64,000 nucleotides of DNA from Epithemia pelagica (Eukaryota; Protista; Bacillariophyta): assembly GCA_946965045.2 (NCBI GenBank), contig OX337237.1, positions 2,728,001 to 2,792,000 of the forward strand. The letters run 5' to 3'. Below, piece by piece: positions 3,954 to 37,464 of the stretch. The translations under genes and the position numbers were made by a program. Below the pieces are notes generated by a model that saw only the letters and a program-made list of their open reading frames with translations, was not told where the DNA came from and ran no database searches. Position 1 is the stretch's first letter; each line of letters opens with the position of its first letter.

Positions 3954-6345
3954 ATGTTGCCTGGATCTTCCGCCTCTTCGAGAACGGCATTTCGATTATG
4001 GGATCGAAGCAAGAATCATAGAGATCTATCTCAAAGAAGAAACGGAGAGGATGATGAAAGAGCAACCATCGGAGCGATGCATCACAAGGAAGGAGTCCAT
4101 GGTGCACCACAAATTGTGAAGCAGGTTCTGGTAGGTGAGCCGAGCATTCGTTCGGGAGAAGTTCGACCTATCCATGATCCCCAGCGCTCCTGCAGCTTCA
4201 TTCCTGTTGTATCCGTAGAAGACGAAGGTGCTTTGGAAAAAACTGAGCACAGGGACGACACTCAACATGACAACGATGGTTCTTTCCCCCAAAATCGTAT
4301 CAACAGTGGTGATGACACAGATTGCGGTCCTTTGTCGCCCAAACGCGAGGCTGCAGACGAACTTGATTATACGAGTCGTTGCACCAATGATGACATCACC
4401 CGAGTTATGGACGAAGGGCCACCAAAGAACATCAAGACTATTCGATATGTTATGGACCCAGGATCGGTCGTACCAACTCATCGCGCCACCACACTGGACG
4501 AATCCGACGAAGATATGGGATCGCGTCCTCTGTCCTCGTTTTCATCATCTTATGATGAGATTGAAAGTCTTCGTCGTTGTCGAAAACAGGAAAATCCTGG
4601 CGACTCATTGAGTGCGGAAAAGATTTCCGATTACGACGAAAATGGACAATCTATCAAGCAACCATTGTCTGCATCGGACGCCTCGTCCTCCAAATCCTTT
4701 CACACCGAATACGCATCGCGGAAGGAGCTAATTCATCGAATGGAATGGTTACAAGGACAGCTCGACCATGCCAAACATGTCTTGGCCAAAGAAAAGACGA
4801 ATCGCAAGCGCAAACAAAAGAGTTTGATCAAACTGGCAGATGAAATGATGAGACGACAACGAGAAAGAAGTGAATTACAGGCCTCTATCAAGGAGGTATG
4901 AACAGTCATGAGAATTTTCCGTGTATTTGATTTGTTCCATGGTCACCTGCAAACTGTCTCTCACCTAAATAGTTTCGTGTTCGTTTAATCGTTGCGAAGC
5001 TTTCCATTCAATTGCTACAAACAAAGACCAAACTGCTGCAATCCAACAATGACCGTGACAGTCTTGATCGTATGCTCAAACTAGGCTCGGGACAGATCAA
5101 AGCATCGTTGGAACAAGAGACAAATTCACGGACCACTGGCAACTCCCTTTCATTTAATGCGACAGTCATGGATACCGTTGACCAGTCTCTTCCAGCTGGA
5201 ATTGAGACGATCGAGAAAGAAGCAGTGAATGGACTGATGGTTTTACAGCAGCATTCTAGGAACAGCTCTACGGTTGGAAAGGGTGTATTCTGTACCTCAA
5301 ATTACTCGTCACTTGAGATCACGAGAGAAGAAGACGTGAGATTGAGCAATCGCAACCCCTCATCCCAAAACGACAACTACTACGCTCGGTCCGTGGCCAC
5401 CAAGACTGTATGCACTGGCGTTTTTGCCCATTCTGACAGTGTGGCCCCCAGTACTGATTCCGACACATATTTGCCGCAGTCACCACAGATTGTTGACTTT
5501 TCGGTTGTCATGTTGTCTTCGGAAACCATCCAGCGAGAAAATGTGATAAGGTTGAATTCCGAAACTCAGACCACAAACAATGGATACACCGTTGCGGCCA
5601 CCACAGAACCAACCAGTTCCCCGAGGAAAACCATCAAAAATCGACCACCGCAAGATGCTTTGTCGGCTTCATCAGGAACACTACCAATCCCCTCAACGAC
5701 TCGCTCAAAATTGTCCAACGCAGCACAATCTAGCGAATCCACGCAACAGGAAGCTCTCGCTCCGGGTGAATCTCGGCAAGAAGAAGGTAGATCTCGGGTT
5801 TCTAGACGCTACTTTCACAATGGCTTGTGTGCAGTTCTGATTGGTCTGTCGTTGCTGCTGACAGCGGCAGTCTTGTATCTATTGCACACTGACCTTTTTG
5901 AACTAAACGGGTGGTGTTCCCCTGTCATGCCTGGAATGACTGTGTCGCCAATGGATGAAATTGAATGTGTTATGATGCGCCCTGGTGGGTAGCCGATGAG
6001 TCCCTATGGAAAGCTCGAGCGTTTGAAATTCTCTGTGGAAGCATTCGTCCTCGAATTCGATTGCACTGGAACAACAGAGGAGGTTTGCTACTGACCGAAA
6101 TTGGTGGAAATACGACTCTGCCCCACACCAATTCATTCGACATCAATTACCGGCCTATCAACCCAGGATTGTACTATGATAGGCACCAAGCACGGAAACG
6201 TCTGTCTTCTGACATGAAGGAAGTTTCACTTGTGAAAAGTACCTTCCAAAATATCTCTATGGTGAACATTACCGCCAGGGCGCTATTCGTCCACGGTCAA
6301 ACACCAGATCTTCTGCAAGAAATCCCAGCTCCATGGGCACTCTGA
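3954..6345 (+). CDS. Uncharacterised coiled-coil protein with a C-terminal TM segment; intron 4896-4972; apparent frameshift near 5968
   Basis: ORFs 3945-4901 and 5012-5992 join in phase 0 across a GT..AG intron (4896-4972). TM-like LIGLSLLLTAAVLYLL. The overlapping ORF 5965-6345 continues with YDAPWW...AFEILCG. The start codon is uncertain. Confidence 0.55.
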
Positions 6346-15768: not shown

Positions 15769-16296
15769 TCGGTGCCAACGAAGAGAGAACAGGAATGCTA
15801 CGGGCTTACCGCTTGTCCTGGTCGGGAATCAATCAACATGGGGCACTTTGACTCGAAGCTTGAATAGACCATGTTGAAGGAGGTTCACCCCCGGACATTC
15901 CACCTTCTAATGATGACTTTCTTCGCTCCACCTACTACTTGCTGCTTGTTGACATTGGCAGTTGACAGATCTACTCTATTCCCGGTTCCCGACTTCGGAG
16001 AATAAGTGATGGTGGCTTGGGTTGTTGGGGGAGAGGCACAAAATAGCCCTTGTGCGACTGCTGATTGCCGATGGTTGCTACGAGCTCCACCGCACGAAAG
16101 TTCTTCGCGCAGTAGCCCGTGCTTCACCAACTGATGAGACTTCCGCCCAACGAGATTCACTACACCATACATTTTCCAAGAGTAAAATGAATTGCCCCTC
16201 ATCCACGGTTGATTTTCTCGTAAGGTTACCTCGTACCGATGAAACCTCTCACCATGATACGAGTATGCGATTACCCTTCCTGTACGAGTGGTAAAA

Positions 16297-19038
16297 CAAC
16301 AATCATACTAGTGCAAAATGTACAAACCGCTTCCTAATGATAAGCCTATTTTATGTTACCACCACCACTGCTGCTTGTGGTCGTTGTTATAGGAGATTGT
16401 TGCATTCAGCCGAGACGAGGAGTTCATTGTTGAGTTTGGCCCCGTTGTCGTGGCACCGGATTGTCTCTTTCAGCCAAACCAAGGAGTTGATTGTTGCGCT
16501 TGTTGTAGAACCGTAGAACTGAGAGAGACAGAGATGGAGAGCAGCTGGTGATTGGTGTGTTTGTTGTCATTGTCATTATCGTGGCCCCGAAGTGTTTCAC
16601 TCGGCCGAACCAACCAGTTGATTGTTATGATGGGGACATGCACTGCCACGCGAGGCCAAAACCAATTGGTTACATGTACTTGGTTGTGTCTGTGGTCATG
16701 GTTGTGGGTGTCGTATCATCATCACCATCCGATGGCTCGGTCGTTGTGGTTGTTGGTTTTGTCGTCGTGATTCTCCATCCTGTTCTGGTTGTGGCGACAT
16801 CGGCCGAGGAGGCTGCCAAAAAGTGAAGGGAAGTCTCCCTCCATTGTTGCACCATAACACTACCTTTCAGTTGTTTATTGTTGTGTTCTTAGGTCCAGTA
16901 CAACCTCGCTGTTGTTGTTGTTGTTGTTTCCATCTGTGGTCCTGTCTTGGTCGTTGTCGCCGCTCATCAACTTGTCGAACCAAACAGTTTGCCGCTCCCA
17001 AGGCTCTTCGACCAAGGCCACCACAGCTCCACGGCGTCCACTCCTTCTTCTTCCTCTCGAACTCTGTTGTCGGAAGCAGCCGCACCACGGGCATCACCAT
17101 CCTTGATGGCAGTAGAAGCCCCTTCGACCCACGGTTGACACTTGTTTTGTTAGGACTAGTCAGGCTTTTGTTGCGTTAGAACCACCAACGGACGAGGCGC
17201 GCATTTGTTGTGTTCGGACCAATCGATGACGACGAGTTGATTGATGCGAGAAGAAAGATGCTGGATTCATTATATCGATTGCCATCCTCTTCTTTCCACG
17301 GTCACTTCCTTCGCTCCGGTTGCCAAAAATGGAAGGTCTTCCAAATCTTCCTGTAGCTCCACAGATTTTCACAGTTCATCCCTTCCCGTCCATTCCCTCA
17401 CGGTACACATGAAGATCAAGCTTCCTGGATGGTCGGCGGAGTGCTTGCACCTTTCGTTGGAGGTGCACACCGGCTTGAGTGTGCCATGGTGGTGTTATGC
17501 AGTGCAAAATGACCGTAATGCTCTTCCTACCAAGTTAGAATCACTATAGAAAAAACAGTGGAGGCCCTGAAAGCACGGATTACTGCGCGATGAACTTTCG
17601 TGCGGTGGAGCTCGTACTCCTTGCTACCCGCTCTCTACCTTTCTACGCATATCTGCATTGTACTCCCAGGGAGTACTGCCATTGTACTACTCCTTGTTTG
17701 CTGGTGTCTGTCGAAAGGTGTCCCAAACAATATACGGACTCCGGGGGCCGAAAAATTCCCCCACAGTTAGCCGTGCTTTTCATACTTGTACTCCATTGTC
17801 TATAGTTATCTGGGCCGGTGGTTTAGGAAACCACGGTCATGATACACAACATGGCAAACTCAAGCCGGTGTGCACCTCCAACTAAAGGTGCTAGCACTCG
17901 ACCACCACGGAGTCCTCAGAATCAAGTGTACTGTGACGGAATGAACGGGTGGCGATGGGTTGGCCATTTTGGTGGACCGAAGGCAAGGTTTTTAAGTCTT
18001 CCAAATCCTGGTGGGAAGGAAGCAACAAGATTACCAAGATTGGAGTCGGAGAATGATGTAATGAAGAAAGATTGCAATGAGGGACGACAATGGAAGCTCC
18101 TAAATGGATGGATGAGTCGTGGGAGAGCAGCGGCAAGGACACACGGCAATCAACTGGAGGATTCTCGTCTGAACAAAACAGTCGGCCGCAACAACGACAA
18201 CACCAACAACAGACTGTCTCTCAATGTTACGAGACCACAAGAACCCAGCAACAACCGGCCACCTTGTGGAAGTGAAGGGTCGAGTCCATCATCATGGCTG
18301 CAACAACCGCAACAACCTCAACCACAACAAAGACAGCGACTGATTTGTGGCACCACACGACGAGTTGGACGCGAAGTGAACCATTGTTTCCCAACGACGT
18401 GAAGCCCACGACCACAAAACCAACATCCACCACGACCATTCCATTGGATGGTACAAGACAATGGCACCAATGCATCATTCAACTACTCTAGACCTCCAAC
18501 AAAACCTAAATGCAACAATCCACTCCTCGTTTTGGCCACAACGACAACAACATCCAATGCAACAATCAAAAGCGGGAGGATCTTGACGACAAAACCAACA
18601 GCCACAGCGAGCGAGCCATCGGATGGTAATGATGATACGACACCCACAAACGTGACAACAGATACCACCAACCACACAACCAACTGGTTTTGGCCTCGCG
18701 TAGCATGCATGCCCCCATCGCAACAATCAACTCATCGTTTTGGCCGAACCAAACAATCCGGGGCCACGACAATGACAATGGCACCAAAAGCAACAATCAA
18801 CTGCTCTCCATCTCTGGTTCTTTCAGTTCCACAGTTCTACAACAAACACAACGATCAACGCCTTGTTTCGGCCGAACGAGACAATCCTGTGCCGCGACAA
18901 CGACAACAAATGCAACAACCAACTCCAAGTGAAACCATCACCTATACCCATGACAACAAGCAGCAGTGGTGGTGACTACATAATATAGGCTTATAATTAA
19001 TAAGTGGGTTGTATATTTTGCACTTGTATGATTGTTGT
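16297..19038. repeat. Long imperfect inverted repeat; arms ~16297-16800 and ~18560-19038
   Basis: CAACAATCATACTAGTGCAAAATGTACA... at 16297 is the reverse complement of ...TGTATATTTTGCACTTGTATGATTGTTG near 19038. The shared blocks CACCACCACTGCTGCTTG and CCATCCGATGGCTCG occur in inverted orientation. Confidence 0.8.
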
Positions 19039-19043
19039 AAATC

Positions 19044-19255
19044 TACTTTAATAGCCAGGTTGGGACGAGGAGGAGCTAGGGTGTGAGGAGTGGCTTAACT
19101 CCGAGAAGGGCAATAGCGACGAGGAGTGGACTGCCCCTGTGAGATCCGCGTAAGCGGATCGAGGGGGCAGTCCACGACGAGAAGCTATTGCCCGACGAGG
19201 AGTTAAGCCACGAGGAGCGCCCTGCGACGAGGAGTCCCCCGGGGCTATTAAAGTA
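19044..19255 (+). other. Rod-like nested hairpin (~212 nt) at the left end of element A
   Basis: Nested stems TACTTTAATAGC/GCTATTAAAGTA, GGGAC/GTCCC, GTGGCTTAACTCC/GGAGTTAAGCCAC, GGGCAATAGC/GCTATTGCCC, GTGGACTGCCCC/GGGGCAGTCCAC and GATCCGC-GTAA-GCGGATC, separated by purine-rich G..A loops. Confidence 0.95.
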
Positions 19256-20221
19256 TGTTAGCTTCCTTTGTCACGAGGAGTCGTGCGGGCGCACCCTAGG
19301 TAATTTTCGGTCTTCCTAAGTGATCGTTTATCTCTATCGATACTTAGTAATAGTTGGCCTATTTAGCTTTTTACATTCGCGCCGGTACAGTGTTAGTTAG
19401 GTATCTTGCTTGCGTGCTTGCGCACCTCATCCGATTGCTCGCGTTTCTCAATAAGCAACATACTGTCGTGCTTGCGCAACAAATCCGATGGCTCGCGTCT
19501 ATCAAATAGGTACATACGACAAGTCGTGTTGTTTACATAGGCGTGACACAGGAATACATAGGTAATGTCTATATATTACTTAGATCCCCCACCCCCCAAC
19601 GGACATTCCCACGATAATCTCTCACAGACGACACATTTTGTGCAACAACAATGCAACAACATGATGAGAAAAGGAAGACAACCGACCATGGTGACTCCTC
19701 CTCCTTCTGGTGGAGTTGCTCATGCTTCCAAACAGGTTGATTGTGGAGTCATAGACCTTTGCACCCCTCCTGATGTAATAGATCTTTGTAGTTCGTCTTC
19801 GTCGTCTAGTTGCTCATCAGACTCTTCGGGCGAAACTCTCGTCTTTGTCACCAAGGACAATGCAACAGACGAATGGGATGGCAATCTCTTTCGCCGCTCG
19901 GAACTCTACCACGACTGTACTGGGTCATCCGACGACTTCAGCACCTGTAGTTCCGACCCTTGGATCATGGAAATCCTACAGAGACGGTAAGTTTTCGCCG
20001 CGTTTCCCACCATTGTCGTGTGTTTTCGTTCCAGACGTCTTCCCAAAATTTCAAACCACCTGCCGTGCGCGCGCGCATGGTTGAGTCGCTGTTCTGTTTC
20101 CTACTGATTCCTACGTGTAACCTACGTGTCCGCACTTTCTCGCAAGTGTCACCGTCTTCACTTTCCTCACCCTCATTTTTCATTGTGCATCGTTTTTTCA
20201 TCGTCGTTTCACAGCCTGACC

Positions 20222-23200
20222 ATGGCGACTCGACAATCTCGCCGCCAACTGGAGCGGGCGGCCGCAAGAAACAATGTGGACGCCACAAACTCAACCAATA
20301 ACGTGAACCCGTACCGAAATCCCGGCCGCCCACCCAACAACCGTGCCAATCGTCCGCCATTAACGGAAGTGAACCTTCCTCCTTCCCGAAATCCTCGTCG
20401 ACAACCACAACAACAAGACAACATCCAAGCTACAGAGCAATCAAAGTAAGTGACAGTATGTTTTGTTTCTATTCTTATCTGTCTCATTCTAACCACCATG
20501 TTTCCTTTTTCCCTTCAGCAATGTTGCGAGGCCTGATCCTTCTTCCCGTCGTCACCAGATCGAAGGTCTCGATCTTCCCAATGGCGCCAACGACGCCCTT
20601 CTCAACGCCGCAACGGTTGTGGAATCTTGCAAAGTGGATACCAAGCTTGTATCCCAAGCTTTGGTCAAACGGAAGCATCTGACATGGGATGCCGAAAAGG
20701 GCTCCATGCGGATTGGTGAGGTCACCTTCAACCCGCCCACCATGAACTCTTCTCGTGCACGTTCGTTGGCCGCCTGGAGTCAATATTGTCGTCTGTCTCC
20801 AACCATATACGGCAACAACACCTTCACCATCCGTGACCTCACTGGATGCAAGGCGTCATACGACAAAGAAAAGGCCGCCTCCGTCAACAAATTTTTGGAG
20901 TGTCTTCAAAAGCATCACGAGATGCACTTTCTTCTTGAAATCGTCGAAGATATCGATGAACTGTCGGGTGGAGATACACCAACGCCGCTCCTCTTTCTTG
21001 CTCTCCGCGGAGTGAAGACTCCATCGAAATTGACATTGTTGAATAGTTGCGTAATGGTTTTTCTCGTGAACCATCGAATGCGGGGTTTCAATATGGAAAC
21101 GGATTCGGTGGAGGACCCCAAGTTTTTCTTCCAGCCCAACACAACAATGAAGATGCTGAACCATCTCTTTGCTCTTCTTAAAACACACGGGATCGTGATC
21201 GCTCAAAGTGATCTCAAACATGGGCTTGGCAATTACCATGCCTACCTTGCCGACATTTGGAACAAGGCAGCCCTCGTCCGACCCGAATTTGGCCGCCTAC
21301 CCAATCGTGCACCAACGGCATTCGACGACGAAGAAAAGATGCGGACATGCGAGCCGGAGCTTCGGCCGTTCGAAGACGGCGAGTATTCCACGGCTTTGAG
21401 CATGGGAGTCTACAAGACTTCCCGAGACTTCGGTCTCCGCGGCCCAGAAGTAAGTTGTTGTTTGTTGTTGTTGTATTTGTTGATTGTCGCCGTTGTTGTT
21501 GCTGCTGTTGTCTAACAGTTTGGTTGTTGCATGTTGTCTCCAGATAAGACTACTTAAAGTATCCGATTTAATTTTCAAGGCGTGTCTTGACAAATCGTAC
21601 GGAATGTTGGCTGGGCTTCCCGCGATTATTCTCAAAGAATCTGTGCTTGAGAAATCGTCGCACCTCGCGACGAACAATCTCGCCTTTGATCGAGTCGCCA
21701 ACGATACACAAGACTCGTCGCACATGATCATCGACAACCCAGATGATAAGTTTGCGACGTACAAGATCCTCTTGCACATCATGAAAGTGGCGCACCCGCC
21801 AGGATGGCAGGGTCTGCTGTTTCTAGAGCAGATACCCGCAAAACACCTCAAGGCCCGCAAGGATGGTGCGAAGCACCTCGGTTGGACTGAGCTCGTCCCC
21901 GAGACTTCACAGAATGACGCGGATGGATCTGGCTTCAAGTGTGCGGGTAGATTGGGCGTGAACTGGCCGTTGAGGAATGCCCGTCAACTTGCCATTCGTT
22001 GCAAGTTTGACAACGCCGAGAAGGTGACGTTCCGGACCGGCCGACGCACCGGAATCTCGAACGTTGCCAACTGTGGAGTACCACAGAAGTCGTCGAACTC
22101 CTTCGCCCGTCACAAGTCAAGTGAGGTCAACGTACTGTACCAGGACGTCTCGAAAGAAAATCATGTTCGGACCGTCACGGCCAACTGGTACCGTCCACCC
22201 GAAAAGAGCGACGAGGCCGACAAAGAAAACACGAAGAATGGTACGTAGACTCATTGCATGAATCACTCTTTATACTTTGTTACTAACTACTCTGCTATTA
22301 TGTTTAGATGAGGAGGGATCCAAGAAGAAAGAGTCAAAAACCGCTTCATCCCCCTCGTCCTCGTCGTCGTCCTCCACCGACATTGAGGCCTTTATGAAAA
22401 AGGCCAAGAAGAAGATTCGCCGTCGCAAGGCGTTGCAGCAGCTCAAGGCTGCCAAGAAACAGAATGACGATTCGTCCATCGAAGACGAGGATTCATTGGC
22501 GCGAATCCTTCGTCTCTTGGACGAAAAACCATCCAAGTCGTCCAAGTCGCAAACCCATGGTAAGTTGATTGTTGCTTTGTTGTTTTCTTGGTTGCATCGA
22601 TCTCATTCCGTCTTCTCTTGACCACAGACACCAAATCCAAGAAAAAACGCAAGAAGAAGAAGAAGAAGAAGAGTAAGTCGATCGCGGACTCATCATCATC
22701 GTCATCTTCATCGGATGGCATGCTTGAAGTTCTTTCCCGATGTCAAAAGAAAAAGAAAACTTCTCCGCCCTCTACCATCGTTGGTACGTAGATTGTTTTG
22801 TTTTGTTTTGTTTGATTGTTGCTTTATATGTTCTCACTGCCATTCCCTGTTTCATCACCTTCGTCCACTCCAGTGGCTTCTTCAAAGCCTCCTCCACCAC
22901 CTCCAGTCGAGCATGAAGCGCCACAACCGCCACCACCAGTCGTTGTACCACCACCACCACCAACAACAACAACCACGGTGGCCGTGCAACCACCACCAGC
23001 TACGTCAACAATGGACCAACATGCACCACCTCCAAACAGTGCAACAGTCCAAGCACCAACAACAACCACCGTAACAGCCATGAAACAACCTCCACTGCCA
23101 TCTACTGTTACGGCCACGCATCCACACCCAACAGCAACGACTGAGCAACAGCCACCACCACCACCACCACCAACCATTGCGACCACGGAACCAACGGTAT

Positions 23201-23715
23201 CCGCTGCAGCTCCACCAGCCATTGCGACCACATCAACGTCGCAACCACCTCCACCACCACCAACCATTGCAACCACGGAACTGCCACCACCACCCACAAA
23301 TGTGCCATCGTCAACGGCCCTTGTTCCGACGGAACACCACACCAGCCACCACAATCCCTCTCAGAATCATCACGGTGGATATCATCGCAATGACGGTAGT
23401 CGAGACCGCGGGGTTGATTGTCGTGTGGAGGAGCACCATCGTGTTGCTTATCATCGCAACAACTGGTACTCCCCACCTCCACCACCATCCGACTCGCCGC
23501 CATATCATCCTCATCATCATTCCCACCACCATTCTTCCCGAGGATACCACCACCGCCCGTACACTCCATCGCCACCACCCCCACCGTACTACCGTGACCA
23601 CATCCACCACCGTGGTGGTGGATACACTCCACCACCTCCACATCATCATCATCATCACCATCATCGTGGTTCGCGTTACCATGGCGGTAGCCATGGATAC
23701 GGCTACCACTATTGA
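20222..23715 (+). CDS. Tyrosine recombinase (Crypton-like) with a long low-complexity C-terminal tail, ~1033 aa, 6 exons
   Basis: Exons 20222-20445, 20519-21449, 21544-22240, 22308-22559, 22628-22783 and 22874-23715; all introns are GT..AG and phase-compatible (3102 nt). YR motifs FGLRGPE|IRLL..SD (Arg), EKSSH (Lys), FRTGRRTG (HxxR-like) and ARHKS...VLY (His, with Tyr at 22138). Confidence 0.8.
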
Positions 23716-24388
23716 AGTACCATAGTATTCGGTACGTTTGCTGTTGTTGTTGCATTCTTGTTGATTGCTGTATCATTGTTCTTACCCCTTTATTCACTCT
23801 TTTTGACAGATTGATGTCGCTATTGCTCTTTGCATGACCATTTGGGTGGTGGTCTCTAGCTTGACGTCTCGAAAGGTACGTGAGAATTAGATGATGACAC
23901 TTGTTCCGCGTTCCACTCCACGTTACGTACCAGTTTCTCACACGTTCACGATTTTTGTAATTCTGTCTTGGCATGAAATTTCGTGGTGCATCTCTTTGCT
24001 ACTGAATTTTCCGTGTCGTGTGAAAACTCGTCTGTGTCGTGTTTCAATTATTGCCTACATTTTGATTATTGTTTTTTGGTCTCTGTGTTTCCGTTGCTGT
24101 TGCTGGTGCTTGCTGCTTGATTCGTGTGGTGTTTGTTTGTTGTGCTCTTCTTTTTTCCGTTGGGTGCACCTCTTGTTCGCTTTGTGCTCTTTCCCGTATT
24201 CTCTCCCTGTGGATTTCCTGGGTGTACTACTTTTCTGGGTGTACTACTTTCCTGGGTGTACTACTTTTTCATTTTGGGCTATTCTAATTTTATACACTAA
24301 AATAAAAATCCAAGTACAGTAATTTTTAGGGCTTATGTAGTGTGGGTAGCGTTTTGGGAAAGGTACGACGACGAGTGGTGAAGGTAGT

Positions 24389-25396
24389 AAATCTACTTTA
24401 ATAGCTGAGGGTGGACGAGGAGGAGCTAGGGTGTGAGGAGTGGCTTAACTCCGAGAAGGGCAATAGCGACGAGGAGTGGACTGCCCCTGTGAGATCCGCG
24501 TAAGCGGATCGAGGGGGCAGTCCACGACGAGAAGCTATTGCCCGACGAGGAGTTAAGCCACGAGGAGCGCCCTGCGACGAGGAGTCCCACGGGGCTATTA
24601 AAGTATGTTAGCTTCCTTTGTCACAAGGAGTCGTGCCAGCGCACGCTAGGTAATTTTCAGTCTTCCTAAGTGATCGGCTCTCTCCTTCGATACTTAGGAG
24701 TCGAGAGCCAAATTATTATTATACAATTACGCTGACCCAACTTTTGATAGGGCACTAGGTAATCTTTAATTGTTTGTAAATAGCCATGTCACTTAAGTGA
24801 TCACATCCGATTACATCGGATGAATAATAACGGTTTATGCTTAAGTAACATTTGTCTTACATTTTTTGGAAGGCCAATCAAACTCCGAGGCGTGCCTCGT
24901 TTTTAAATAAGACAACAGAATACTTACGAGTAGAGTCAATGAATGTCCCCCATTACCCCCACGCCTCTTCTCTCCTTTCCCGTTCCCGACCCGACCCGAC
25001 CACGACCACTGAATAAACGACACAAACACAACAACAATGGGAAAGCTGACCAAGGTGAGTCCTCCTTCTCCGGGAGGATGGAGGATGTATCCATAATCCA
25101 TCCACCAACAAAAGCTCTACCAACTCCCAACTCACAATGATGGTGGATTGTTGCGAATTGCGAACCTCTGTCCATTGTCCATTCCTGGCCGTCTTTTGGT
25201 TTGTTTTTCGTTTCGGTGTTTGGGTGGTGCTACTTTTTGTTTCTTTTCCCGGGCTATTTTGCATGATTACACTAGAATAAAAAATCTACGTACAGTAATT
25301 TTAGGGGCTTAGGTAGTGTGAGTGTGGGGAGTGACTTACTCCTCAGTGAGTCCTCAGTGAGTGGGGAAGGGTAGGACGACGAGTGGTAAAGGTAGT
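24389..25396 (+). mobile_element. Non-autonomous copy 'B' (1008 bp) of the YR element, head-to-tail after A
   Basis: Same left end and hairpin (24394-24605) and same right end (...GACGACGAGTGGTAAAGGTAGT), with no long ORF. Collinear with the copy at 35877-37464. Confidence 0.85.
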
Positions 25397-25585
25397 ATTA
25401 ATACTTCCCGGTGTCGAGTCCTTTCAAGGAGGGACCGCCCGGCGCGGAGGGTAGAATGACGAGGAGGGCAATGGTCGAGGAGGGCGCACGCCCGACAAGA
25501 CAATTGCCCGTCGAGTCATTCTCCCGACAAGCCGGGCGCGCCCGACGCGAGAGGACGGCCAGACACAGGGAAGTAGTAAACTTAC
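25397..25585 (+). other. Divergent rod-like hairpin 'C', probably the left end of a related element
   Basis: Stems TTAATACTTCCC/GGGAAGTAGTAA, GTGTC/GACAC, GTCCT/AGGAC, CGCCCGGC/GCCGGGCG, GGGTAGAATGAC/GTCATTCTCCC, GGGCAAT/ATTGCCC and GGGC-GCAC-GCCC, with GAGGA/GACAA loops. It starts immediately after B's GTAGT end. Confidence 0.8.
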
Positions 25586-25804
25586 TCCCTATCAAGCTGT
25601 GTAGGTAGTGAGGATTTCCTGGAAGCCATGTCACAAAGTGTCACACAAGTGTCACACAAGTGTCACACACGAGAGGGAAACCGCGCGACTCGCACGAAAC
25701 TACTTTCCGGTCGTACAAAAATTCCTACTGTAGTATAAAAATGTGAGACGAACTACCTACACAGTCTGGTATGGAGTTAGTGGTGAACCTCCCGTCTCCC
25801 GTAC

Positions 25805-35876: not shown

Positions 35877-37464
35877 ACTACCTTTATCACTCGTCGTTCT
35901 ACCGTCGTCGTGCCCTTCCCCACTCACTGAGGAGTGGGTCACTCCCCACACTCACACTACCTAAGCCCCAAAAGTTACTGTACATGGATATTTCATTTTA
36001 GTGTAGTAATCTAGAATAGCCCGGGAAACGAAAAAGTAGGTGTTGGTTGTTGGTGCTGTGTTGTGTCTTGTGTTGTTGTATCAGTCGGAGTGGGAAATGG
36101 GGAACATTGACTATAAGTATTCTGTTGGAGTATTTAAAGAACAAGCACGCCTCGGAGTTTGATTGGCATGCGATAAATGTGGGACAAATGATACTTAGAC
36201 ATTGAGCGTTATAAGTCATCCGATATAGTTGTATGTAATCCCTTAAGTGACCAGGTTATTTACAAAGGATTAAAGATTACCTAGTGCGCCATCATGAGTA
36301 TGGCCAGCGTAAGTCTCTAAGACTAATTAGGCTCACGAGTACTAAGTATACATTAAGTGTACCGATCACTTAGGAAGACCGATAAATACCTAGAGCACGC
36401 TGGCATGACTCCTCGTGACAAAGGAAGCTAACATACTTTAATAGCCCCTGGGGACTCCTCGTCGCAGGGCGCTCCTCGTGGCTTAACTCCTCGTCGGGCA
36501 ATAGCTTCTCGTCGTGGACTGCCCCCTCGATCCGCTTACGCGGATCTCACAGGGGCAGTCCACTCCTCGTCGCTATTGCCCTTCTCGGAGTTAAGCCACT
36601 CCTCACACCCTAGCTCCTCCTCGTCCCACCCTGGCTATTAACGCCATACGTAAGGAACGCGTTTTAAGCCTAACGGATTAGCAAATAAACTACTCCCATA
36701 AAACTTTAGCGATATATGGTTTGTGTCCCATAAACTGCTCCCATCTTAACACGGTTTGAAAACTCCCAGTTTTAATTTCGAGTACAAATTTATTCATAGT
36801 GAGAATTTTTTGTCATTTTAGTCGCTTTTCTCGAACTTGAGCGGCCATCCGCGATGACCATGAGAGACAATGAGGGCGGACAATGAAAATGGCATGGATC
36901 ATCTTCCAATGATGCCAAACCAGGTCAGAATGGATGAAGGAAAGTCAATTGATCAAGACAGATGGTATGTGGAGGCGAAAGTTGACCAAGGAAAGGTTCA
37001 ATGTGTCGAAAAAGGGTCAATGCTGTGAAGCAGGCAAAAACATGGTCTGAGAGAGGGAATTGCCGAATGCTCAACAGAGGTGCTGTCAAATCACAAATAA
37101 AGACAAAGTCCTATAGTTCATATTATTTTACACCAGAATGGAAGGTCTTGACATTTGCTGTTGGAAATTGAGTGTGTGCGTACTGCTCAAAGTTGGGCCA
37201 TGGTCGATGGGATGAGAAAATCACAAAAATCATCCAAGTTTTGATACACGAAACGACTGTTATAATTTCAAAATCAGTGTAGACTATGATATATGAAAAT
37301 GTTCAAAATTCCACAAACTATTAGAATTACAAGTGAAAAAGACAATGACGTCTATATTCCAACTAGTAGATGTCTTCAAAGTTATGGGAGGAGTGTATAT
37401 ACTGCTCGAATTTATGGGATCAGTATATATACTGCTCCCTTACGTATGGCGTTAAAGTAGATTT
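35877..37464 (-). mobile_element. Non-autonomous copy of the YR element (~774 bp net), interrupted by a MITE
   Basis: The reverse complement has the same left end (AAATCTACTTTAA|TAGCC), the same hairpin (36434-36641) and the same right end (...GACGAGTGATAAAGGTAGT). Confidence 0.88.
36642..37451. mobile_element. 810-bp MITE with 14-bp TIRs and a TTAA duplication
   Basis: Perfect TIR CGCCATACGTAAGG at both ends, flanked by TTAA (36638-36641, 37452-37455). Removing it restores GGCTATTAAAGTAG, as in copies A and B. Subterminal TCCCATAAA repeats. Confidence 0.9.

Follow-up and report, generated by a model that had tools for sequence, protein, structure and literature searches.

Crypton-like transposons of the diatom Epithemia pelagica form seamless arrays at an insertion site that they probably renew themselves

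In this study, a 64,000-nucleotide stretch of DNA from the diatom Epithemia pelagica (C10:2728001-2792000 of a 60.5-Mb assembly in 23 contigs; hereafter the window) was found to carry three mobile elements, named A, B and C, that follow one another base to base. The three probably constitute a Crypton-like group that is moved by the tyrosine recombinase of A and whose target is rebuilt at the right junction of each insertion, which leads to seamless arrays. They are Crypton-type transposons with a self-renewing insertion site, a variant that has not been described before. A preliminary description of this DNA had read the array as the work of circular intermediates that integrate serially, in a manner reminiscent of integrons; as a whole, that interpretation is partly supported.

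Junctions, target and route of insertion

Element A (19038-24387; all features lie on the plus strand unless stated otherwise) is 5350 bp long, autonomous and Crypton-like, and its left and right end motifs pair with each other. It is followed by B (24388-25395), the 1008-bp long form of a non-autonomous element, and B is followed by C (25396-25780), a non-autonomous element of a 385-bp family. The limits of the elements were set independently through other genomic copies. Since these limits abut, no target DNA separates A from B or B from C, as had been claimed: A ends with G 24387 and B begins with T 24388, and B ends with G 25395 and C begins with T 25396. The junctions read GTAG^TAAAT-CTAC (A/B) and GTAG^TATTA-ATAC (B/C). 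The core of the first, AAGGTAG^TAAAT-CTACTTT, occupies 24381-24399 (across 24377-24405, GGTGAAGGTAG before and TAAATCTACTTTAATAGC after the boundary), and that of the second, AAGGTAG^TATTA-ATAC, occupies 25389-25404 (across 25385-25409, GGTAAAGGTAG and TATTAATACTTCCC). Both agree with the preliminary description, which gave the second as GTAG-TATTA-ATAC (25392-25404). Its range of 24380-25410 includes both junctions but not the full elements, what it called A being the last 95 nt of the 5350-bp element, and C running on to 25780. The composite junction pattern AAGGTAGTANNNMTAC occurs twice in the window, only at A/B and B/C, against 0.03 occurrences expected from shuffles. The outer flanks of the array, GTTG (19034-19037, the final four bases of an unrelated repeat, Y) and TGGTGAAC (25781-25788; TGGTGA-AC, with AC at +7 and +8), are the left and right remnants of one good GTNG^N6AC target.

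The target rule was derived from the flanks of solitary copies (38 left and 44 right flanks for the A/B family). On the left, G is found at -4 in 36 of 38 cases, T at -3 in all 38 and G at -1 in 37, with a free base at -2 (A 16, C 12, T 7, G 3). On the right, six unconstrained bases are followed by A at +7 (41/44) and C at +8 (33/44). The A/B target is G-T-N-G^N6-A-C, and insertion occurs without target-site duplication. For the C family, whose left flanks show T at -3 (70/74), A at -2 (73/74) and G at -1 (73/74) and whose right flanks show T at +1 (50/62) and A at +7 (41/62), the target is D-T-A-G^T...A(+7)C(+8). Base -2 varies even between copies that are 99.5% identical, which assigns GTNG to the target; at the right, 50 of 51 ends finish in the same GTAG, which assigns this motif to the element. 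The last bases of each element are GTAG or TTAG. Because the terminal GTAG comes from the element, the right junction, GTAG^N6AC, is again a perfect target. This is the commonest form of the target, bordered at the right junction by the element arm AAGGTAG, and the earlier claim that each right end recreates a target half-site is thus supported. The crossover accordingly lies at the G before the caret: left ends always retain TAAAT or TAAGT, and right ends always continue into bases of the target. The GT..AC rule also applies on the other strand, where it would place an inverted newcomer four bases from a resident right end; a tail-to-tail pair at C3:2335288/2335293 (GTAG-CTTA-CTAC, 4-nt gap) matches this exactly.

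In the proposed mechanism, the recombinase of A would join the end-to-end junction of an element (...AAGGTAG^TAAAT-CTACTTT...), presumably offered on an excised circle, to the loosely palindromic G-T-N-G^N6-A-C, with crossing-over at the G directly before the caret. After insertion, the left junction would consist of the GTNG of the target, and the right junction of the GTAG of the element and the intact right half of the target. The right junction would then be a full target joined to the element's own recombinase-binding arm, and a further element, from this family or a sister family, would insert exactly there. In the window, A, then B, then C would have entered in this way at the single original site GTTG^TGGTGAAC. 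The circular intermediate is inferred from the Crypton model and from the gene for a tyrosine recombinase; equally inferred are which enzyme mobilizes C, in what order the elements arrived and how many strands are exchanged.

Seamless junctions are not confined to the window. In the A/B family, 3 of 41 left ends abut a right end of the family: in the window, where B has 1008 bp; at C1:373326, where an A copy of 99.6% identity is followed by a 762-bp B; and at C17:2060126, where a long element, about 80%-diverged, is followed by a 933-bp form. The flanks of the three loci are unrelated. Junctions of a B-type element with C occur at two loci, in the window and at C10:3416672. In the C family, 11 of 85 left ends lie in precise tandems, among them eight C/C tandems and one of a 213-bp short form. 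From the motif density of the window, about 125,000 GTNG-N6-AC and about 227,000 DTAGT sites were estimated genome-wide, so that 0.02-0.04 tandem junctions per family are expected by chance. The comparison of tandem with solitary copies that had been suggested thus gives about 100 times or more tandems than motif-based chance, and no duplication or deletion, which would be typical of other mechanisms, was seen at any tandem junction of the genome-wide set. The heterotypic junctions arose independently, A/B at three loci and B/C at two; the loci are unrelated and the B subtypes differ, and serial site-specific insertion, as proposed earlier, explains them best. Four or five C right ends also precede starts that resemble the left ends of other families (TGTTC-TAC-TTCCCGCTCGC, TAAGA-CTAC-TTCACGG and TGATA-TTAA-TTTCCGGTGTC; L132, L149, L153 and L196), and mixed arrays are probably commoner than counted.

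Coincidence or an artefact of assembly is hardly credible as the origin of these junctions. The reads of the source organism were represented by four runs of Logan DNA contigs, which break at repeats and speak neither for nor against the array, and no read was found that bridges either junction; in such data, tandem junctions would look like circle junctions. Against an artefact, however, base-exact junctions recur at no fewer than 14 places on many contigs, where fewer than 0.1 would be expected. Their members differ in subtype, and 23 contigs for 60.5 Mb suggest that units of 0.4-5 kb lay well within single long reads.

A more serious alternative, which is nevertheless considered unlikely, is homologous recombination of an excised (or dimeric) circle with a resident copy, or unequal crossing-over, either of which gives the same seamless junctions. 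In its favour, eight tandems of the C family are homotypic, A/B could have formed through the roughly 315 nt (left) and 100 nt (right) that A and B have in common, and the excess of tandems goes far beyond the frequency of the motif. However, B-type elements and C were joined twice though only GTAG is common to them, and C right ends also precede the left-end-like starts of other families at the four loci named above. No A/A, B/B or B/A junction was seen genome-wide, despite the greatest homology lying in A/A and B/B. Recombination between homologous copies cannot yield the tail-to-tail pair with its 4-nt gap, whereas the target rule does. The heterotypic junctions and this pair argue for site-specific insertion as the main route.

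Several observations weigh against site-specific insertion of the kind proposed. The short-read DNA contigs, which stop at repeats, showed neither circle junctions nor excision footprints nor empty alleles. Only one of the two products of a staggered two-strand exchange over a non-homologous spacer is ever seen. In both families, the elements' own left ends carry A-C at +8 and +9, and the targets carry it at +7 and +8; this unequal spacing means that a simple symmetric core of two monomers with equal spacers does not fit both partners. The arms around a 5-bp spacer that had been described at the junction are present in the sequence, but the symmetric picture drawn from them is incomplete for this reason. 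The A/B tandems are all of the long-then-short type (found at 3 of 11 long right ends and at none of the 40 other right ends; post-hoc p about 0.008), a bias that the model does not predict and that is unexplained. Tandem enrichment is far stronger than the motif alone predicts, which indicates that insertion strongly prefers a resident end to the motif by itself or that a second route contributes; binding to the resident arm, or recombination (for example of a circle) with resident copies, could provide this extra contribution. A search for empty sites through the flanks of the array, of which the left is a repeat of about 40 copies and the right is nearly unique, gave no empty paralogue as far as it extended.

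Some of these points would be accommodated if the palindrome of the left end (200-260 nt) folded, as a single strand or a cruciform, and served in this form as the substrate, with one pair of strands exchanged at GTAG^ and replication completing the insertion. Such a folded site would explain why a single crossover point is seen, why the spacing differs between the partner sites and why the hairpin is so extremely conserved. We regard this variant as improbable; if true, it would be a eukaryotic counterpart of the recombination of integron cassettes and CTX phage, building cassette-like arrays.

Recombinase and structured ends

Two overlapping open frames are found in A, and both align to a single 600-codon frame in copies that are about 83% identical. 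The frame break corresponds to a 94-nt intron (21450-21543; GTAAGT...CTAAC...CAG), through which the homologues read. Exon 1 (20493-21449), whose frame is open from 20493, ends in ...FGLRGPE, and exon 2 (21544-22248), which includes the stop codon, continues with IRLLKVSDL, the two parts making up Box I; TFRTGRRTG and ARHKS...Y follow in exon 2. Box I is uninterrupted in transcript-derived homologues from the diatoms Entomoneis paludosa and Cylindrotheca fusiformis, and the transcript-derived P0012 and P0033 lack the insert. Homology searches and fold analyses were performed with the separate exons or with the natural read-through open reading frame (ORF) of a paralogous copy (L036, equal to P0153), in which the intron is open; the modelled fold is that of this read-through ORF. 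Alignments of 30-39 homologues revealed a near-invariant R...R-x-x-R-R...R-H...(9 residues)...Y in addition to Box I (GLRGPE-I..LKVSDL); in the catalytic set R...(H/R)xxR...(H/W)...Y, an arginine takes the place of the first histidine.

When the alignment profile was compared with PDB, XerA was the sole match, aligned over exactly the catalytic motifs (E 0.076). An alignment-based AlphaFold2 (AF2) model reached a predicted local distance difference test (pLDDT) score of 80.8 and a predicted template modelling (pTM) score of 0.81; it was used in place of an AF2 model of the single sequence of exon 2, whose pLDDT was 31. The model matched the catalytic domain of Cre with a Z-score of 11.4 over 165 residues (root-mean-square deviation 3.9), followed by XerA, XerH, phage integrases, IntI (2a3v, Z 8.4), Tn1549 Int, Flp, topoisomerase IB and QRICH1. 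Foldseek E-values were weak (best 0.09), and the fold call is based on the VIA Z-scores and the uniform list of matches. The neighbours in the Atlas were eukaryotic clusters of integrase, Tyr-recombinase, NDC10_II and DUF3504. Motifs and modelled fold together indicate that A encodes a tyrosine recombinase. The ratio of nonsynonymous to synonymous substitutions (dN/dS) is 0.06-0.12 between subfamilies and the recombinase frames are open in all four young A copies; judged from these sequences, the gene is under purifying selection.

An exhaustive HMMER search revealed 210 relatives; none bears a functional name, and in the few cases where a source is given, it is a diatom. Ten of them were scanned against Pfam and showed no domain above threshold, one relative gave a sub-threshold match to Phage_integrase, and a word-index protein search returned no match for the recombinase of A. 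In the 16 ORFs of A that were scanned, out of 24 of at least 80 amino acids listed for 18900-24500 on both strands, no Pfam family was matched at E<=0.01 and hence no reverse transcriptase (RT), Rep, helicase or DDE domain; Rfam gave nothing relevant.

These results bear on the idea that the elements are rolling-circle or single-strand transposons of the Helitron, IS91 or IS200/IS605-like kind, with tandems arising by read-through of the terminator. Such transposons would share with A, B and C the lack of terminal inverted repeats (TIRs) and target-site duplications, insertion 3' of a fixed tetranucleotide by an element that finishes in a similar one, large subterminal hairpins and a single crossover point. 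The sole conserved gene, however, is a tyrosine recombinase under purifying selection, and Rep, HUH and helicase domains are absent from the 16 scanned ORFs. The ends are TAAAT...GGTAG and not 5'-TC...CTRR-3', the target is GTNG^N6AC and not A^T or T^T, and read-through of one template cannot make heterotypic arrays. This origin is therefore very unlikely.

With respect to the start of the gene, a diverged subfamily (L036:1764-1900) has an ATG (MAEVLPN...) at a place where the young A reads IEGLDLPN without an ATG (window 20493-20700), and in the young A the first in-frame ATG lies about 70 codons downstream of IEGLDLPN. The true start may be located in an upstream exon, for example in the ORF at 19565-19990. 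The 3' third of A is a low-complexity region rich in Pro, Thr and His that is open on both strands (22816-23715 on the plus strand, 23108-23974 on the minus strand); it is poorly conserved between subfamilies (alignment gap at A 4030-4340) and has no Pfam match.

The left ends of the elements begin with TNNNN-(N)TAC and continue as a long imperfect palindrome. In A (19038-19300), TAAAT-CTAC precedes a multi-stem palindrome some 200 nt long. Conservation of this 263-nt left end exceeds 95% even among subfamilies that are saturated at silent sites of the coding region (dS at least 0.7), and the end is therefore regarded as cis-acting. The left end of B, with the right end of A in front of it, folds at -71.5 kcal/mol (z -9.3). 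The left-end hairpin of C (25396-25590), which is unlike A/B in sequence and alike in architecture, folds at -53.2 kcal/mol (z -4.7). Comparable end hairpins were absent from metagenomic contigs of distant homologues (L197-L200), probably owing to incompleteness of these contigs. The right end of A (24293-24387) has the last bases ...GACGAGTGGTGAAGGTAG. Just inside the right end of A (window 24214-24268) are three tandem 17-nt units (TTTCCTGGGTGTACTAC), and B has one related unit at about 25228.

Families, neighbouring repeats and significance

A genome search with 24270-24650 returned 40 copies or more, with similarity beginning at 24384-24388 and not where the preliminary description had placed the start. 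A scan for both end motifs gave 42 left ends and 51 right ends of the A/B family, which pair into 38 complete elements. Eleven of these measure 5.3-6.7 kb and the remainder 0.2-3.4 kb with the same ends; the shorter classes comprise two elements of about 3 kb, four of about 1008 bp, about 20 of 711-782 bp, one of 933 bp and one of 213 bp. Of the A copies, four share 98.6-99.6% identity and three about 83%. The first 300 nt of A are 94% identical to the start of B, and B has its first 315 nt or so and its last 100 nt or so in common with A; by its sequence, B is a non-autonomous derivative that carries the ends of A. The interior of B that is not derived from A contains ATGGGAAAGCTGACCAAG followed by GTGAGT (25038-25062), which resembles a first exon and its splice donor, and this part may be a captured host fragment.

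The C family (about 385 bp; at least 97 left ends in the genome, most of them 95-99% identical) is a second, separate non-autonomous family. B and C have no conserved ORF, and the GTAG motif is the only sequence they share. At another locus (L121, C1:461544-462357), a 213-bp short form of C is present as a tandem pair and ends at the internal GGTAG of C (25604-25608 in the window), which indicates that an internal GTAG can substitute for the usual right end, and C may be made up of two modules.

Repeat Y, at whose end (...TATGATTGTTG) A sits exactly, has about 40 copies in the genome. A second, inverted copy ends at 16296, and the two form a 2.7-kb inverted pair (window 16296-19037). Past the end of the inverted copy the sequence reads TTTACCACTCGT, a 12-nt identical match to the A/B right end in reverse complement. 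Y itself may belong to the group, with GTTG as its right end, in which case the array would be Y-A-B-C. An additional B-type copy lies on the minus strand at 35878-36641; its right end is intact (GTAG^TCCAAGAC), and about the first 10 nt of its left end are missing (TAAATCTACT).

The elements were also considered as introners, with a G-TAAGT left junction and a ...AAAG-GTAG right end that would allow them to be spliced out. This idea was not supported, in what was a weak test: for reconstructed empty sites of 51 solitary C copies, a 180-nt frame was open in 24% of sense and 35% of antisense cases against 46% of random windows, and a sense bias was absent.

Crypton DNA transposons have been treated by Goodwin et al. 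(2003) and by Kojima and Jurka (2011; PMC3212892). To our knowledge, no class of eukaryotic DNA transposon is less well understood; we know of no biochemistry on them, their limits are hard to define, and the only target rule known to us is "microhomology". Epithemia pelagica offers a young and apparently active family with exact limits, a sharp target logo (GTNG^N6AC), one unambiguous crossover point and a clear assignment of autonomous and non-autonomous partners, in which four nearly identical autonomous copies keep a recombinase under purifying selection. Stacking into seamless mixed arrays by means of target-like last four bases is a consequence that has not been described for Cryptons. 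Such arrays create local hot spots of insertion and could be misread by annotation software as single composite repeats. The lack of functional names among the relatives of the recombinase, and of Pfam domains above threshold in the ten that were scanned, makes the family invisible to standard annotation. A eukaryotic tyrosine recombinase with short, defined sites could also be of interest for genome engineering in diatoms.

Comparison with known systems

Cryptons carry only a recombinase, have no long repeats, show 4-6-bp microhomology and give rise to non-autonomous derivatives (PMC3212892, PMC13465315). The elements described here agree with them in several respects. A tyrosine recombinase is the sole enzyme and RT is lacking, which sets them apart from DIRS, Ngaro, PAT and VIPER. 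They have neither TIRs nor long terminal repeats, and the short direct repeat at their limits is microhomology and not a duplication: GTNG in the left flank and the terminal GTAG are alike, and the flanks are otherwise unrelated. Short non-autonomous derivatives exist, and Cryptons occur in stramenopiles, including a diatom (CryptonS-1_PTri of Phaeodactylum tricornutum). On the other hand, CryptonS has the motifs H-S-x-R-R-G ... G-G-W ... Y (alignment in PMC3212892), whereas R-x-x-R-R ... R-H ... Y is found here, with no Pfam match, DUF3504 and GCR1_C included. Oomycete CryptonS has TATGG as its microhomology and the element of Phaeodactylum has CTGTAAG (PMC3212892), compared with GT(N)G/GTAG here, and the conserved hairpin-forming left end of about 260 nt and the distal A-C requirement of the target are further differences. 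No seamless tandem arrays of Cryptons were found reported in the literature searched. With regard to the named clades (CryptonF, S, A and I), the structural and Atlas neighbours include the CryptonA-derived DUF3504/QRICH1, the DUF3504 domain of QRICH1 being Crypton-derived (PMC3212892), and Pfam DUF3504 itself gave no match.

Transposons of the IS200/IS605 and Helitron type resemble the present elements in inserting 3' of a fixed motif without duplication, in a target-like right end, in subterminal hairpins and in known tandem copies. They differ in using a HUH/Rep enzyme in place of a tyrosine recombinase, and in their end sequences.

The bacterial integrative elements that accrete in tandem (CTX/RS1/TLC at dif, islands at tRNA genes) and the circles of the Tn916/Tn1549 type are alike in that a tyrosine recombinase integrates a circle next to a resident, since att is rebuilt at one junction; Tn1549 Int is among the fold matches. 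These systems use one chromosomal att, or AT-rich targets with heteroduplex coupling sequences; in the elements of E. pelagica, by contrast, the element always supplies the spacer of the left junction and the target always supplies that of the right junction.

Integrons, to which the array had been likened, share with it a tyrosine recombinase, serial insertion at a site that each insertion recreates, a folded imperfect palindrome on the mobile partner and a single apparent crossover, and IntI (2a3v) is among the fold matches. The likeness had nevertheless been overstated. There is no fixed platform of integrase gene, attI and promoter (intI-attI-Pc), and arrays start at any resident copy, being present at 14 or more dispersed loci of which most have no recombinase gene nearby; the units are transposons and not promoterless gene cassettes; and the host is a eukaryote. 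Single-strand exchange is a trait of integrons and only a proposal here. The comparison with integrons is thus an analogy and not a statement of membership.

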